From positions 1 through 64,000 of the forward strand of contig LC659289.1 in the NCBI GenBank assembly GCA_020891255.1: a DNA stretch of 64,000 nucleotides, written 5' to 3'. Of the stretch, positions 9,964 through 39,317 are shown one piece after another; within the stretch, counting starts at the first letter, position 1; the number at the start of each line of letters is the position of its first letter. The notes under the pieces were generated by a model, which did no database searches, had not been told where the DNA came from, and worked only from the letters and a program-made list of their open reading frames with translations. Source of the stretch: Entomortierella parvispora E1425 (Eukaryota > Fungi > Mortierellomycota). A program made the position numbers and the translations under genes.

Positions 9964-10150
9964 CTATGTACTTAACATGTTTGTTTTATTTTTTCTTCTT
10001 TATAGCTATCAAAAACCAAATATACCTCCCCTATTCTGAAGCTGAACCTTCGGTTTTTATTCTTAATTATAGATAGAATGAGTCTAATATAATTAACAAA
10101 AGAGTTCATTATCACTTCGTTAAAAGAGTTTATCAACAAACTGATTTATG

Positions 10151-10960
10151 TTAATATATTAGTACTAAAGATATATAATTTTTATAAACTTTTTTAGTAT
10201 CTAGATACGTAGATATAGTAGTTCTAGGTTTCTCTAATTTACGAACTGATTCTGAAACCGAATATAATTCATATAGTAATAAAAGGTCCGAATTATAAAT
10301 ATATATTCTTACCGGTTTAGTTGATTTAAGGAAAACTTTTTCATCTAATTTATTAACTATATTTCTATTCAATAGGTCCATTGAAAAATAAATATTATTT
10401 TTAAACAATCTACCAATTTTATATATTTGAATATACTAACATCACTTATGTTAAATTTTTTTCCTGTCTCTTTAGCAGAGGGATACTGATTTAGTAATAT
10501 TTTATCTGAGGAGAAAACATTTATAAACCCATTCCCTAATAATAAATCTTCAGAAGATTTACTTTGACTCATTAATCTTTTACTCTCTGAGGAATACTTG
10601 TGTCCAGCTCTAGAATCCGCCCATCTTAAAATATTATATTTAGAATTATAGTTATTAATTAAATATTGCTCAAATTTTATAACTTCCTTAGTATTACTAT
10701 CAGGTAATGTAGTTATTATTAAAGAGAAATTCTCATTCACAATTTAATAAAGCACTAATTATTAAAGAAGAATAATTCAATTTATGAGTATTATAAGTAT
10801 AATAAAATTTTAATCGAGAAGCTAAATTAATTAAATTATCAATGTAACATTTAGAATTGTTTCTATTTAGCCAGATATAATAACCAGAAACATTTTTAAC
10901 ATTATTGAAAATTTCTTCTCTTTGAAAAAAGGATTATTGTAAACGGAAGTTTGGCTTATA
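10151..10960 (-). pseudogene. Degenerate GIY-YIG endonuclease
   Basis: SGYYIWLN...CYI, FEQYLIN...YNILRWA...GHKYSSE across broken frames. Confidence 0.7.
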
Positions 10961-11008
10961 TTTTTTATTTCCAAGGGTAAAATATCTTATTAATAGTCTT
11001 CATTTAAC

Positions 11009-11071
11009 AAGGGGGATTTTTAATCCCTTGGTTTATAACTACTCCGCTGCTCGTTCCCGAACACCGACTAT
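11009..11071 (-). pseudogene. Second copy of the rns 3' terminus (helix 45 plus C-rich tail)
   Basis: 11011-11071 aligns ungapped to 12134-12194 with 6 differences, all in the helix 45 stem. Confidence 0.9.
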
Positions 11072-11181
11072 TAAAAAAATTTTCTCAAAGTAAAACTCCC
11101 CTTGTGTAAGGGGCCAATCCCACCCACCCATTCTACTTATGAGAAATTAAATTATAGTCTATTGACTATAACTTCTAAGTA

Positions 11182-12066
11182 CTATGACTCTGCAAACCAA
11201 ATGTTAATTATTTCTTGTCTTATTTCCTGAGTATAAACATTATTTTTATTTATATTATACTTATCAATAACAGATAATATTTTAATAATTTTATTTAAAT
11301 TTTTTAATTTAATACCATATAAAGGATATTTTTTAAAAAAAGGAATTAGAGTAGATCTAAAAAATTCTTTATTTTCTATTAATAATCGTATTGTATTATT
11401 AGGGTAAATATTTAATTTATTATTAATATTAAAAAATTCTTTAATTTCATTCATTAATAGGAGATTATTTTTATGTTGAGTAAGACTAATAAAAATCTTA
11501 CAAAATTTAGAGTTATCCAGAGTTAAAGTACTAGGATATATACTGATAGAACCATCACCTGCTATAAAACCTGATATATAATTACCATTAATAGGAATAT
11601 AATTCTCACTATTTTTATTACAATGTGAAGGTAAATAATCTTCTAAACTTACACGTGAGCGATTCATATTTTTAAATAAATCTTGTAATTTTACTATCCC
11701 TTCTGAAGTCAAATGACTTTTAGATGTTATAATTTCAGCAGCTACACACCAAGAATAAAAATCTTGTAATTTATTACCTCTTAAAGGATAATTTTTAAAA
11801 TGTGGTATAAGAATATTATTTATATCTGATATCTTAGAAATAGTTAAATGTACCATGTCATTAGATCTAGGTTTAGAAATAATCCCACAATTCAAATAAT
11901 TTTTAAATTTATTTAATAAATCTAAATCATTTTGCATTATTGCTATACTAAATCTTAATTTAGCCGTATATTTTCCAGCTTTCGTTTTGTAAATATTTAT
12001 ATTAAAACAACCTTCTGCTTCAGTAAACCCAGTAAAAAACCATCCAAAATCTTTATTATTTTGCAT
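11182..12066 (-). CDS. Intact double-motif LAGLIDADG endonuclease (294 aa from ATG 12066)
   Basis: WFFTGFTEAEGCF and YISGFIAGDGSI motifs; YPLRGNK. Confidence 0.92.
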   Translation of the reverse strand: MQNNKDFGWFFTGFTEAEGCFNINIYKTKAGKYTAKLRFSIAIMQNDLDLLNKFKNYLNCGIISKPRSNDMVHLTISKISDINNILIPHFKNYPLRGNKLQDFYSWCVAAEIITSKSHLTSEGIVKLQDLFKNMNRSRVSLEDYLPSHCNKNSENYIPINGNYISGFIAGDGSISIYPSTLTLDNSKFCKIFISLTQHKNNLLLMNEIKEFFNINNKLNIYPNNTIRLLIENKEFFRSTLIPFFKKYPLYGIKLKNLNKIIKILSVIDKYNINKNNVYTQEIRQEIINIWFAES

Positions 12067-12133
12067 ATTTTTGTTAACCAAGGGTAAAGTGTAGATCCCC
12101 TCTTAAGTCTATTGACTTTTTAGATCTTAAAAA

Positions 12134-13695
12134 GGGGGATTTTTAATCCCTTGGTTTATAACTACTCCCCAGCACGTTCCCGTACCCGGACTATGTTTCG
12201 ACTTAACAGCAGTTGTGAAGAAATGGACATAAGGAGAAATCATAGATATAAATTATATCTGGATACCGTTTTAATGGTAACTATTTTAGTTAAGATAAAT
12301 TATAAATAAGACCTCCCTATTTGAGATTACTTCACTTCCGCCGCTTGACGAGCGATTTGTACACGCCGAATATTATGTTTCACCAGGACATCCTGATTCC
12401 TGATTACTAGCAATTCCTACTTCATATAATCGAGTTGCAGATTATAATTCGTTTATTAACCTTTTTTAAAGATTAGCTCAAATATAAATTTTTGCTTCTT
12501 ATTGTAAAGGTCTTTGTGGCACGTCTATAGCCCACTTCATAAGGGCCATGAAGGCTTGTCTTAGTCCTAATTAACTCAACATTAATCGAGTACTTCTGTA
12601 GTTTAAATTAAACTTTATACAAAATTTCACCCAAGGGTAGATCTTCTTATTTTTAATTTTTATAATTACAGACAAGGGTTTTGCTTGTTAACGAAATTAA
12701 TCTAACGTCTTACGATACAAGCTGACGACAGCCATGCAACGCCTGTGTTACCAATTATATTGGTACATTGCAAGAAGTGGTAAGGTTATGCGTGGATTAT
12801 CGAATTAAATAACATGCTTCACTGCTGGTCTTCAGCACCGTCAATACTTTTGGGTTTCAATCTTGCGACAGTACTCCCCAGGTGGAGTGGTATAGTCTTC
12901 ACATTAAAACTGAACTTAATTTCCAATTTTATCCACTCATAGTTTAGGGTATGGACTACAAGGGTCTCTAATCCTTTTTGCTCCCCATACTTTAGTATCT
13001 CAGTGTCAGTGTTTAATTAGATAGATGCCTTCGCCTTTAGTGTGTCTACCAAGTATAATAAGATTTCATCCTTACTCCTAGTATTCCTCTATCTTCAATT
13101 ACACTCTAGTATCTCAATTACATTTTATAGTTTTTCTATTGAAATTTTATAACTACTGTTTGATAATACAACCTACATACGCTTTAGACCCATTTATGCT
13201 GAATAACGTTAACCCCTCTCGTATTACCGCGACTGCTGGCACGAGATTGGTCGGGATTAATAAATAGGTAACGTCATTATCCTCCCTATCTTAGAGGTAT
13301 ACCATAAAGATGCTTTTCCTCTTCTAGTTAGCTGGATCAATCTTTCGATCATTGTCCAAAATTCTTTACTGCTGACCTTTTTGTTAGGTATGGCTATTAT
13401 TTCAGAGCCATTGTGGCGAACCCTCCTCTCAGACTCGCTACGGATAATAGGCTTGGTAAGCCATTACCTTACCAACTACCTAATCCGAAATAGGCACATC
13501 CCGCGGCGAAAACTTTCCTTTTTCTTCTGGCAAGCCAGAAGTATATTAGGGATTAACCCTATCCATGGTGTAGCTTCCTATTTATTCCTCACCTGGTCGC
13601 TATGAATATATAATATTCATTCAACTAGCATGTATTAAACTTCTAGATAACGTTGATTCTGAGCCAAATTCAAACTCTTGCGATATTAACCATAT
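12134..13695 (-). rRNA. rns: Mitochondrial SSU rRNA; ends approximate
   Basis: AGAGTTTGAATTTGGCTCAG 5' motif, GTGCCAGCAGTCGCGGTAATAC, GCTGTCGTCAGCT, helix 45 with GGAA loop. Confidence 0.95.
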
Positions 13696-13959
13696 AATGG
13701 TGACAAAATTTATTATTATTTCTATAAAAAAACGGAGATACCCGCATATATTTAATTATATAATGAGAGCCATAACAAATCTAAATATATATTTTGAATA
13801 AAATTATTAATTTATTGGGCTCATTGTTAATATTTAGGGGGGTGTTTATTCGTGTACTTATTGTTATATTTATATACCCTCTATCAGATACTAAATAAAG
13901 ACTATTATATTTAATTAACAAGTTTATACATCATTGACTCACGGAAGTAAGGAGTAATA

Positions 13960-36208: not shown

Positions 36209-38197
36209 ATGTATTTAGCAATTATTTTAATTCCACTATTAGGTTCTATATTTAGTGGAATGTTTGGTAGAAAATTAGGAGCACAAGGTAGCCAATTTAT
36301 TACAACCTTTGGGTTGATTTTTACATGCCTATTATCTTTCACAGCCTTTTATGAGGTAGGATTGAATCATTCGCCAGTATCTGTAGATTTGTTCTCATGG
36401 ATTGACTCTGAATATTTTTTAGTTTCATGGGGATTTACATTTGATAGTTTAACAGTTTCTATGTTAATTCCTATTGTATTTATATCTTCATTAGTACATA
36501 TGTATTCTATTTCATATATGGGAGGCGATCCGCATACGCAGAGATTTTTCAGTTATTTATCAGCCTTTACTTTTTGTATGTTATTATTAGTATGTGGAGA
36601 TAATTTATTAGTGTTATTTGTAGGTTGGGAAGGTGTAGGTGTATGCTCTTATTTACTAATTAGTTTTTGGTTTACAAGAATAGCTGCAACTAAATCAGCA
36701 ATACAAGCTATAGTTACTAATAAAGTAGGTGATTGGGGAATGTCTATTGCTCTTTTTGCAATTATTTTTGTATTTGGAAATTTAGATTATTCTAGTATAT
36801 TTTCTTTAGCTCCATATATTAATACTGATATTTTAACATTCATTAGTTTATGTATATTAATAGGTGTTATGGCTAAATCAGCTCAATTAGGTTTACATGC
36901 TTGGTTACCTACGGCTATGGAGGGTCCTACACCAGTTTCAGCTTTAATCCATAGTGCTACAATGGTAACAGCTGGAATTTTCTTAATGATAAGAACTTCA
37001 CCATTATTAGAATATAGTAGTACAGCATTAATAGTAATTACATGTCTTGGATCATTATCAGCGTTTGTTTTTGCCTCAATAGGATTAGTACAAAATGATT
37101 TAAAACGAATAATTGCTTATTCAACAGCTAGTCAATTAGGTTATTTAGGAGCTGTCTGTGGATTAAGTCAATATAATATAGCTTTTTATCATATTATTAA
37201 TCACGCTTTTTTTAAAGCATTATTATTCTTAGCAGCAGGTTCAGTAATTCATGCAATGGCAGATGAACAAGATGTGAGACGAATGGGGGGTTTAGCTAAA
37301 TTATTACCATTTACTTTTGTAGTAATGTTTATTGCTGCTTTAAGTAACATTGCTTTCCCATTCTTATCAGGATTTTATTCTAAAGAAATAATTATTTTAT
37401 CGGGTTATTCACAATATTCATTCCACGGGTCTTTTGCCTATTGGATGACTACCTTTGCAGCTTTATTTACTTCTATTTATACAACTAGATTGTTATATTT
37501 AACCTTTTTTTCTATACCTAATGGACCTAGAAATAATTATGAAAATACACATGAAGCTCCTTTCTTTATGGCAATACCATTAGGAATTTTAGCTATTCTA
37601 TCTGTAGTTTTTGGTTATTTAAGTAAAGATCTATTTATAGGTATAGGTACAGATTTTTTTGCAAACGCGTTATTTATCCATCCTAATCATATAATAATTG
37701 TAGACGCTGAATTCGCATTACCTCTATTTATTAAATTATTACCATCTATCTTAACTATCTGTGGATTTATTGGAACTTTATTATTTTACGAGTTTGTGCC
37801 TAATATCTTAGTTGAAATTAAATTATCTAAATTTGGTAGAATGTTATATACATTCTTAAATCAAAAATATTTCTTTGATTTAGTTTATTCTCGTTTAATA
37901 GGATTAGTATTAAACATTGGGTACATGACACATAAAGTAATTGATAGAGGAACTTTAGAATTAATAGGTCCAACAGGACTTACTAATTTATTTAATAATA
38001 CTAGTAAAAATATCGCTTCGTTAGATTCTGGATATATCCCTAATTTAGCACTTTATATCATTTTATCTGTTATTACATTAACAGGTGCGATCTTGTATTT
38101 AGACGACGCGCGTTTATTATTGATCTTTATTTCTACTTTATTTCTTCTTAACTCTCGTCATTTTACAACTAAGACAAACTCCCCCCTTTTTTATTAA
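36209..38197 (+). CDS. nad5: NADH dehydrogenase subunit 5
   Basis: GWEGVGVCSYLLI, AMEGPTPVSALIH, HAFFKALLF. Confidence 0.98.
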   Translation: MYLAIILIPLLGSIFSGMFGRKLGAQGSQFITTFGLIFTCLLSFTAFYEVGLNHSPVSVDLFSWIDSEYFLVSWGFTFDSLTVSMLIPIVFISSLVHMYSISYMGGDPHTQRFFSYLSAFTFCMLLLVCGDNLLVLFVGWEGVGVCSYLLISFWFTRIAATKSAIQAIVTNKVGDWGMSIALFAIIFVFGNLDYSSIFSLAPYINTDILTFISLCILIGVMAKSAQLGLHAWLPTAMEGPTPVSALIHSATMVTAGIFLMIRTSPLLEYSSTALIVITCLGSLSAFVFASIGLVQNDLKRIIAYSTASQLGYLGAVCGLSQYNIAFYHIINHAFFKALLFLAAGSVIHAMADEQDVRRMGGLAKLLPFTFVVMFIAALSNIAFPFLSGFYSKEIIILSGYSQYSFHGSFAYWMTTFAALFTSIYTTRLLYLTFFSIPNGPRNNYENTHEAPFFMAIPLGILAILSVVFGYLSKDLFIGIGTDFFANALFIHPNHIIIVDAEFALPLFIKLLPSILTICGFIGTLLFYEFVPNILVEIKLSKFGRMLYTFLNQKYFFDLVYSRLIGLVLNIGYMTHKVIDRGTLELIGPTGLTNLFNNTSKNIASLDSGYIPNLALYIILSVITLTGAILYLDDARLLLIFISTLFLLNSRHFTTKTNSPLFY

Positions 38198-38508
38198 AAT
38201 TTTTAAAAATAGTTAATTATTAACAATAATACGAGAATTTATTAAACAGTCTAATATATAATATTATCTCGTAATTAACTTTTAAGGTTTGAGTCTTCTA
38301 ATCTTTAATTTTACCATAAAGTGTGTTAAATAAATAAGTATAATATTAAAATAATTTAGTTATATATGTTAATAACTAATAGATGATTAATAATATTTTA
38401 GGAATAGAAATTAATATTAAAATATATGATATGATTACAATCATTTTTTTCAATCATCGAGTTATCGACGGGTTACTTACACTTAGCGGAGATTCAAAAA
38501 ATAATTAA

Positions 38509-39142
38509 AATGGAATTAAAAGGTAAACCTGGAATTTACGGGTTTCTTTGTAAAACTAATAATAAATTATATATAAGTTCTTCAAGTAAATTATCAGTTC
38601 GTTTTAATAAACATATAAATGGATTACAATCCAATGTTTTACTTCAAAATGCAATTAATAAATATAATTTGTAGGATTTTATTTTTGTAATTTTTGAATA
38701 TTGTGAGACAGATAAATTATTATCTCGAGAACAATATTATTTAGATACCCTTGAACCTGAATTTAACATCCTTAAAATAGCTGAAAATTGTTTAGGATTA
38801 ATACGTTCAAAGGAGAATAGAGATAAAATTAGTAAATTCTTTAAAGGAGTACCATTATCTGAAGAACATAAATTAAATATAAGTAAAGCAAGACTTGGTG
38901 AATTACATCCAATGTATGGTAAAAATCACTCAAATAGTACAAAAATCAAGATGAGTATTGCTAAAGGTACGCCTATTTTTGTATATTCTAGTGATAGTAA
39001 TACGCTAATTTATAATTTTACTTCATTAAAAAAAGCTAGTGAATTTTTTAATTGCTTAGATCATACGATTAAAAGATATTTAAATGGTAAATTGTTTAAA
39101 AAACAATGGATTTTAACTTCAAGTATTAGAGATTCTTCTTAA
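38509..39142 (+). pseudogene. GIY-YIG endonuclease with premature TAG, followed by a nad5 3'-end copy (39135-39179)
   Basis: MELKGKPGIYGFLCKTNNKLYI, REQYYLD, HPMYGK. Confidence 0.8.
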
Positions 39143-39317
39143 CTCTCGTCATTTCACAATTAAGACAAACTCCCCCCTTCTTATGGAAACATTTTTATAG
39201 TTAATATTGAAAATTATTAATAAATTAATATTGGACTTATTCAATAAAAAATAAGTTAATACTGATAATATAAAATAGATTAATACTTAAAAGTCAGTTC
39301 AGATTATATATTTTAAT

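Follow-up and report, generated by a model that had tools for sequence, protein, structure and literature searches.

How does a gene for a homing endonuclease come to lie between two copies of the end of a ribosomal RNA gene, and why do these copies differ almost only in one hairpin, through changes that preserve its pairing? Both questions are raised by the mitochondrial DNA (mtDNA) of the fungus Entomortierella parvispora E1425 (assembly GCA_020891255.1, contig LC659289.1, positions 1 to 64,000 of the forward strand; this 64,000-nt stretch is referred to as the window). Here rns, the gene for the mitochondrial small-subunit ribosomal RNA (rRNA), is followed by an intact LAGLIDADG homing endonuclease gene (HEG) after which the rns 3' end recurs, with a second helix 45. 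We propose that the segment is a mobile cassette, about 1.12 kb long and set into rns where helix 44 gives way to helix 45, and that a free-standing HEG very probably replaced the 3' end of rns. The window order is rns, carried helix 45, the intact HEG (family LAGLI-1), displaced helix 45, a dead HEG of another family (GIY-B) and nad2. The parts are as follows, with coordinates in the window.

13685..12155, minus strand: rns, mitochondrial small-subunit rRNA (Rfam RF00177, 802.6 bits, model positions 1-1533)
12190..12167, minus strand: contiguous (carried) helix 45, UCCGGGUACG-GGAA-CGUGCUGGGG, joined to helix 44 and inside the Rfam match
12127..12166, minus strand: contiguous 3' tail with a C-rich motif (AAAAAUCCCCCUU), part of the 68-nt repeat; similar C-motifs occur at other gene ends
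12067..12126, minus strand: leader of the HEG, with hairpin AAGUCAAUAGACUU, a G-rich box and the anti-tail box CCCUUGG before the ATG
ATG 12066, stop 11182, minus strand: LAGLI-1, intact double-motif LAGLIDADG HEG of 294 amino acids, placed by homology in the I-OnuI family
11072..11181, minus strand: trailer of the HEG, with a second copy of hairpin AGUCAAUAGACU (11156-11167) and a CCCCUU/AAGGGG hairpin
11004..11071, minus strand: displaced (distal) copy of AUAG, helix 45 and C-motif tail, the other member of the 68-nt repeat
11067..11044, minus strand: distal helix 45, UCGGUGUUCG-GGAA-CGAGCAGCGG
10958..10981, minus strand: second anti-tail and A-rich leader box (UUUACCCUUGG..AAAAAUAU), repeat family D8, preceding the GIY-YIG pseudogene
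10151..10950, minus strand: GIY-B pseudogene (GIY-YIG/NUMOD1), degenerate, read by three-frame translation with at least two frameshifts

In the RNA sense, the end of rns runs from the end of helix 44 (…GUUAAGUCGAAAC) through AUAG into a 24-nt hairpin and then the tail, which in the contiguous copy reads AGUAGUUAUAAACCAAGGGAUUAAAAAUCCCCCUU. This hairpin is the terminal one after helix 44 and has a GGAA tetraloop on a stem of about 10 bp, as helix 45 should. The lone strong direct repeat near rns pairs 12127-12194 with 11004-11071 (68 nt, 90% identity, 1,123 nt spacing), and the 21-nt core of the tail has two sites only in the window, one in each repeat copy, where none is expected. Seven positions distinguish the two copies, and six of these lie in the stem of helix 45 and form three compensatory pairs: pair 3/18 is C-G in the contiguous and G-C in the distal copy, pair 5/16 is G-U against U-A, and pair 8/13 is A-U against U-A. 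Both copies have a G.G mismatch at 4/17 and the GGAA loop, and both are predicted to fold into the same hairpin (contiguous -13.6 kcal/mol, z -3.8; distal -12.5 kcal/mol, z -4.2). By our own combinatorial estimate, the chance of six differences falling into three pairing-preserving pairs is about 5e-5. The preliminary description of this DNA had reported the 294-amino-acid LAGLIDADG open reading frame (ORF) between two rns 3' ends, and six differences in helix 45 arranged as three compensatory pairs with mismatch and loop retained; the repeat, the sequence and the folds agree with it. The duplication that it described is real; the repeat begins 4 nt earlier, at AUAG, and the identical tail, put there at 37 nt, is 35 nt long, followed by a T/G difference and four further bases in common. 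A soil-metagenome contig, X26, which is 98% identical, covers the HEG together with the contiguous copy and the rns next to it; as it spans the rns/HEG junction independently of the source assembly, the join is no assembly artefact.

The ORF between the copies matches the Pfam family LAGLIDADG_1 at 7.5e-44. Against proteins in the PDB, phmmer returned I-PnoMI (1.8e-44), variants of I-OnuI (1e-42) and I-SmaMI, with the family ranging from 1e-32 to 1e-44, and each of these family members matches the protein in two stretches, i.e. in both halves. LAGLI-1 is thus, as judged by homology, a monomeric LAGLIDADG meganuclease of the I-OnuI type. A protein search found 16 close homologues at 62-91% identity, one of which is annotated as a LAGLIDADG endonuclease in the mtDNA of Podila (Mortierella) verticillata, and the rns of the window is 92-95% identical to the contigs that carry the HEG homologues; taken together, these matches assign the window to a mitochondrial genome of the Mortierellaceae. 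From the contexts of three homologues and from metagenome contigs scanned with a 21-nt helix-44 anchor we assembled a set of 28 loci (labels beginning with L). In five further lineages of the Mortierellaceae type (L023, L004, L007, L016 and the P. verticillata type, L001-3 and L027) an orthologous intact ORF of 292-295 amino acids lies directly after the rns tail, within a leader and trailer layout common to all six HEG-bearing lineages. The orthologues are 70-91% identical and form three groups, with 87-91% identity inside each. Their ratios of nonsynonymous to synonymous substitution rates are 0.15-0.44, and the catalytic acidic residues of both motifs (..TEAEG.. and ..AGDGS..) are kept in all six, which indicates that the HEG is maintained by purifying selection. 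Additional displaced copies of helix 45 lie downstream in all five of the other HEG-bearing lineages.

Empty and filled alleles exist side by side in the relatives. Locus L004 equals L014 plus a block of 1,152 bp that holds helix 45, tail and HEG, with flanks that are 97.5% identical over 2,488 nt downstream and 98% upstream, and the contiguous helix 45 of L014 is the second, displaced copy of L004. Similarly, L013 is without the whole 4.2-kb array of L001-3, though the rns bodies differ at 0-2 of 1,199 nt, and the 3' strand of its helix 45 recurs in L001 as the third and most distal relic. Both empty-site alleles have a single rns end and are missing exactly the block of helix 45, tail and HEG. 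The distal copy of the window is identical to the contiguous, working rns end of L010, over 63/63 nt. A further rns contig without the HEG (X20, from a sample with the source's organism code) has four changes on the 5' strand of helix 45 relative to the contiguous copy of the window; at 12183, 12186 and 12188 its letters are of the distal type, and the fourth change, at 12182, is extra. The HEG-bearing soil contig X26, by comparison, has a helix 45 of the contiguous type. The locus therefore shows what is expected of an element that replaces a gene end: an intact ORF, flanking terminal copies of which the upstream one is continuous with the gene, ORF-less alleles, and a displaced copy of the native type.

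Helix 45 has been swapped independently of the divergence of the rns body. This is seen in pairs of close relatives, for which differences in the body (about 1,200 nt) were set against differences in the 20 stem bases of helix 45; L009 and L028 were left out of the rns alignment, since their helix-44 anchor lies in a displaced fragment of 234 nt and not in the gene. L002 and L013 have no body difference and four of 20 stem differences (p 5e-8), L004 and L015 three and six (p 7e-10), and L010 and L023 seven and eight (p 6e-12). Conversely, L018 and L020 have a helix 45 identical to that of L023 despite 6% divergence in the rns body. A ranking of nucleotide diversity across the whole gene, in which the helix 45 window came only 359th of 1,236 because rns has indel-rich variable regions, was dropped. 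Across the loci there are 15 distinct complete helix 45 sequences, and all of them pair perfectly (135/135 cells are standard pairs) around an invariant GGAA loop. Six of the nine pairs in the alignment change on both sides, and the covariation score is 0.569; shuffled alignments score 0.117, none of 500 reaching the observed value, and slid registers do not exceed 0.071. The outer (3-6/15-18) and inner (8-10/11-13) modules of the stem occur in many combinations, implying recombination or recurrent change.

We propose the following series of events. The enzyme would cut an HEG-free rns allele in or beside helix 45, by analogy with end replacement in protein genes (PMC3630166), and the break would be repaired from an HEG-bearing mtDNA, homology being provided on the left by the rns body and on the right by the resident helix 45 and its tail. 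The cassette thus introduced would comprise a replacement helix 45, a 3' tail bearing the C-rich motif for end processing, a leader, the I-OnuI-type HEG and a trailer. After insertion the rRNA would run into the carried helix 45, leaving the resident helix and tail as an unused relic 1.1 kb downstream. The carried helix 45 would escape cleavage through its difference from the target, and because it must still fold, it could differ only by paired, compensatory changes.

Endonuclease genes in rRNA genes are usually intron-borne, and the 1.12-kb segment might be an unrecognised intron whose splicing joins the rns body to the distal helix 45 and discards the contiguous copy; both copies are complete in the window, and either could in principle finish the rRNA. 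We find this scarcely credible. An Rfam scan of 10000-12400 at E<=10 returned only the rns end and noise, with no group I or group II match, and no intron family was matched in the whole window at the Rfam gathering score. The letters AUAGUC are common to both copies, so that any splice must fall inside them, and placing the splice sites by hand within AUAGUC gave no pair with a U at the end of the 5' exon and a G at the end of the intron. Introns do not duplicate their exons, as 68 nt are here; L004 and L001 have the same architecture with distal copies that are truncated at the 5' side and unable to complete an rRNA, and a C-motif of the kind proposed for 3' end processing stands right after the contiguous copy. 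A group I intron with HEG was accordingly rejected (no ribozyme core P3-P9, no valid boundaries, duplicated 'exon'). It is also highly unlikely that the rns end was duplicated locally in tandem, with one copy diverging in place and the HEG arriving separately in the spacer. The identity of the tails over 35 nt and the A/C variant that both share with their host clade speak for such an origin, but six compensatory differences in 20 stem bases against one in the 44 others are not what drift would leave in an unused copy, the distal copy matches the working allele of L010 exactly, L014 and L013 are single-copy and lack precisely the block of helix 45, tail and HEG, and the same cassette recurs in six lineages. 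The preliminary description had held that the element does not look like an intron, there being no group I core or terminal G, and had read it as a free-standing HEG that replaced the rns 3' end; it had pointed to element-free relatives as a check. The Rfam scan and the placement of splice sites support the former view, and the match to L010 and the empty-site alleles the latter, with three of the four changes in X20 of the distal type and the helix of L014 equal to the displaced copy of L004.

Immunity to cleavage through the compensatory changes is a separate claim, plausible and fitting the pattern, and one towards which we lean by a little. End replacement could be real and the differences nothing but ordinary covariation of the donor's helix 45, brought in by co-conversion, with protection achieved otherwise, e.g. 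by disruption of the recognition site. Many types of helix 45 occur among HEG-free alleles too; with 15 types circulating, carried and displaced copies would usually differ by chance, and donor polymorphism would yield the same letters. Several observations weigh against the scheme proposed above, the first two of them also in this direction. The carried and displaced copies of L007 differ at one pair only, and the two copies in L025, beside a degenerate HEG of another family, are identical, so that the difference is not always large. The AGU type of helix 45 is carried in L004 and L007 and displaced in L023, which a single fixed specificity does not explain and which would require shifts in the specificity of HEG variants. 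The A/C polymorphism of the tail tracks the host clade in both copies, so either transfers are local or the copies have been partly homogenised by gene conversion. In addition, the X19 contig (organism A), from a genome that may or may not have the HEG, shows a contiguous-type helix 45, and the RNA runs gave only conserved parts of rns from relatives, run X7 having no contig over 12044-12311. Against co-conversion stands the junction between rns body and helix 45, which stays continuous after insertion; a site there is undisrupted unless helix 45 differs. Carried and displaced copies always differ at stem positions 3-5 in the six LAGLI-1 loci, and U5-A16 is present in 6/6 displaced copies against 4/13 distinct contiguous types (naive p ~0.008, for loci that are not independent). 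The two copies of L016, like those of L023, agree in the inner module and differ in the outer one. This looks like homogenisation stopping at the outer pairs, gene conversion seemingly being accepted only so long as it does not restore a target. The diversity of helix 45 is also far above the divergence of the rns body. On balance we consider co-conversion of ordinary donor variation unlikely as the full explanation, though it deserves more weight than either of the two readings discussed above.

The cassette with its HEG and replacement helix is not the only element of this kind behind rns, and the related fungi show that such events have been repeated. Clustering of the ORFs downstream of rns separated LAGLI-1, LAGLI-2, GIY-A and GIY-B, along with one unknown ORF family. 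Each endonuclease family lies directly after a copy of the rns tail and is followed by a displaced helix 45 relic with a truncation typical of the family: the relic starts exactly at ^AUAGUC for LAGLI-1 (window, L023, L016, L007), inside the 5' strand of helix 45 for GIY-A and GIY-B, and in the loop or 3' strand for LAGLI-2. In L028, an intact GIY-B of 303 amino acids has displaced 234 nt of the rns end. The displaced 234-nt fragment lies about 1.3-1.4 kb past the true rns end in both L009 and L028, behind an intact GIY-B, and has a CGG/UGG outer stem module like that of the contiguous helix 45 of the window; the rns ends displaced by GIY-YIG elements are thus far longer than that displaced by the LAGLIDADG element. 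The GIY-B pseudogene of the window matches GIY-YIG ORFs of L004 by tblastn (4e-10 and 2e-11), has a weak NUMOD1 match and clusters with intact members of GIY-B in L019 and L011; it represents an earlier occupation of this rns site. A third displaced copy was sought after this pseudogene in the window and none was found, possibly due to an inversion breakpoint there.

We tentatively suggest, as a possibility still short of probable, that an arms race is still going on at helix 45 of the Mortierellaceae mitochondrial small-subunit rRNA, in which at least four HEG families (two LAGLIDADG and two GIY-YIG) each overwrite helix 45 with their own cleavage-resistant, structure-preserving version, so that a hairpin among the best conserved in rRNA now has at least 15 covarying alleles with recombining inner and outer modules. 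L010 carries the helix 45 type that is displaced in the window, and there a helix of the AUG/UUU type is the displaced one; the HEGs may, as this case illustrates, target each other's carried alleles. If the arms race is real, the relics lying one behind another after rns would be a record of which invasion came earlier and which later.

The leader and trailer of the cassette offer some indication of how the HEG may be expressed. A C-rich motif, AAA(C/A)(U)CCCCC, is found on the coding strand at or just past the end of many ORFs in the window (4432, 19805, 38176, 53452, 55051), and after the HEG in L023, L016, L001 and L007. Its distribution fits a general signal for 3' end processing, such as Seif et al. 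in 2005 are said to have described for zygomycete mtDNA. Since the first such motif follows the contiguous helix 45, it argues that the mature rRNA would end there, with the HEG message cut from the trailer; the mature rns 3' end probably lies at the C-motif near 12134, beyond the end of the Rfam match, and the HEG is probably transcribed together with rns, downstream of it, and freed by cuts at C-motifs. The truncated distal copies in relatives likewise speak indirectly for a mature end after the contiguous helix. The CCCUUGG box just before the ATG of the HEG is complementary to CCAAGGG in the tail in all six lineages, as the G-rich box (AAGAGGGG) is to the C-motif, and the 141-nt junction of tail and leader is predicted to form a long-range stem (z -4.4). 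A box of the CCCUUGG type also precedes the GIY-YIG pseudogene of the window and the LAGLI-2 of L016. The complementarity of tail and leader may form a stem for processing or translation control. An identical 12-nt hairpin, AGUCAAUAGACU, occurs on both sides of the LAGLIDADG ORF (12106-12117 and 11156-11167, minus strand) and at no further intergenic site in the window, and variants of it (AAGUCAANNGACUU) flank every orthologue in the other loci. The hairpin AGUCAANNGACU was considered as a genome-wide repeat and rejected, as it is confined to the HEG element.

Some observations concern the surroundings of the locus and other genes. Rfam located the large-subunit rRNA and 20 tRNAs elsewhere in the 64 kb. 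In the window, the minus strand encodes both nad2 and rns, and nad2 comes after the HEG array. In the X19 contig of organism A and in L001 and L004, the two genes are divergently transcribed and the upstream region of nad2 adjoins the 5' end of rns. The difference in orientation implies an inversion of about 10070-13740, including rns and both endonuclease genes. A conserved ORF family, F5 (190-203 amino acids; L001:5281-5892, L007:3516-4088, L025 and L028), has no Pfam match and sits in the arrays downstream of rns, between endonuclease genes and displaced copies of helix 45. A family of GIY-YIG domain ORFs, F1 (L004:7094-8083, L014 and L020; 329-370 amino acids), has an N-terminus that resembles nad2 by eye (MLLLIIKFLVNAIPLAS…) and may represent a 5'-end replacement or a fusion at nad2. 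The 3' end of a probable nad5 (662-amino-acid ORF, 36209-38197, plus strand) is duplicated, 38142-38231 recurring at 39133-39222; the copies are 991 nt apart, 76% identical over 90 nt, C-motif included, and enclose GIY-YIG remnants (ORFs 38510-38674 and 38912-39142). Here, then, a protein gene of the same genome has undergone the same kind of end replacement.

Replacement of gene ends by mobile ORFs is documented for protein genes, namely atp6 of Allomyces macrogynus, atp6, atp9, cox2 and nad3 of Glomus sp., atp9 of Rhizopus oryzae and cox2 of Mortierella verticillata (PMC3630166). As in those systems, a ribozyme-less endonuclease ORF lies between a foreign-looking inserted end and a displaced native end, relatives have ORF-less alleles, and the displaced end resembles that of the ORF-less relatives. 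Here, however, the host gene encodes an rRNA and has no reading frame, the two ends differ by hairpin covariation instead of synonymous codons, the duplicated unit includes the proposed 3' processing motif, and at least four HEG families are stacked at one helix. The matched I-OnuI-family entries in the PDB are named 'Ribosomal protein 3/homing endonuclease-like fusion' (Ophiostoma rps3). Insertions of I-OnuI-type genes in rps3 reportedly restore the displaced rps3 end, according to Sethuraman et al. in 2009; there, as proposed here, an insertion close to the end of a gene would leave that gene functional through a substitute end. The ORF of the window encodes an enzyme of that family (E 1e-38 to 1e-44) with two LAGLIDADG motifs in about 300 amino acids, but the Ophiostoma genes form in-frame fusions with a protein gene inside an intron of rnl, whereas ours is separate and behind an RNA gene. 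Intron-borne HEGs are familiar in rRNA genes, for instance I-SceI/omega in rnl, and nuclear group I introns of the S1506 type lie near helix 45. Such enzymes share with our proposal a LAGLIDADG protein that targets a conserved rRNA segment and spreads by double-strand-break repair; intron-borne HEGs restore the rRNA by splicing, whereas the element in the window has no ribozyme and brings a spare end. In the literature searched we found no description of end replacement in an rRNA gene, although the M. verticillata mtDNA paper (Seif et al. 2005) may mention one, and likewise none of covariation taking the place of synonymous recoding or of a stack of several families at one helix. The kind of element is therefore known; what appears new is the rRNA host gene, the covariation instead of synonymous recoding, and the multi-family stack.

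In protein genes, resistance to self-cleavage can hide in synonymous codons, while a structural RNA allows only paired covariation as a disguise, and the locus appears to be a natural and unusually clean case of joint selection on RNA structure and DNA sequence, with 15 fully paired alleles on rRNA bodies that otherwise hardly differ. The six LAGLI-1 variants, each with a carried and a displaced site, provide a ready series for the study of specificity shifts in I-OnuI-type enzymes. For the fungi themselves, it follows that universal conservation does not keep a ribosomal helix from being exchanged horizontally, which calls for caution where the 3' end of rns is used for the phylogeny or barcoding of these common soil fungi.

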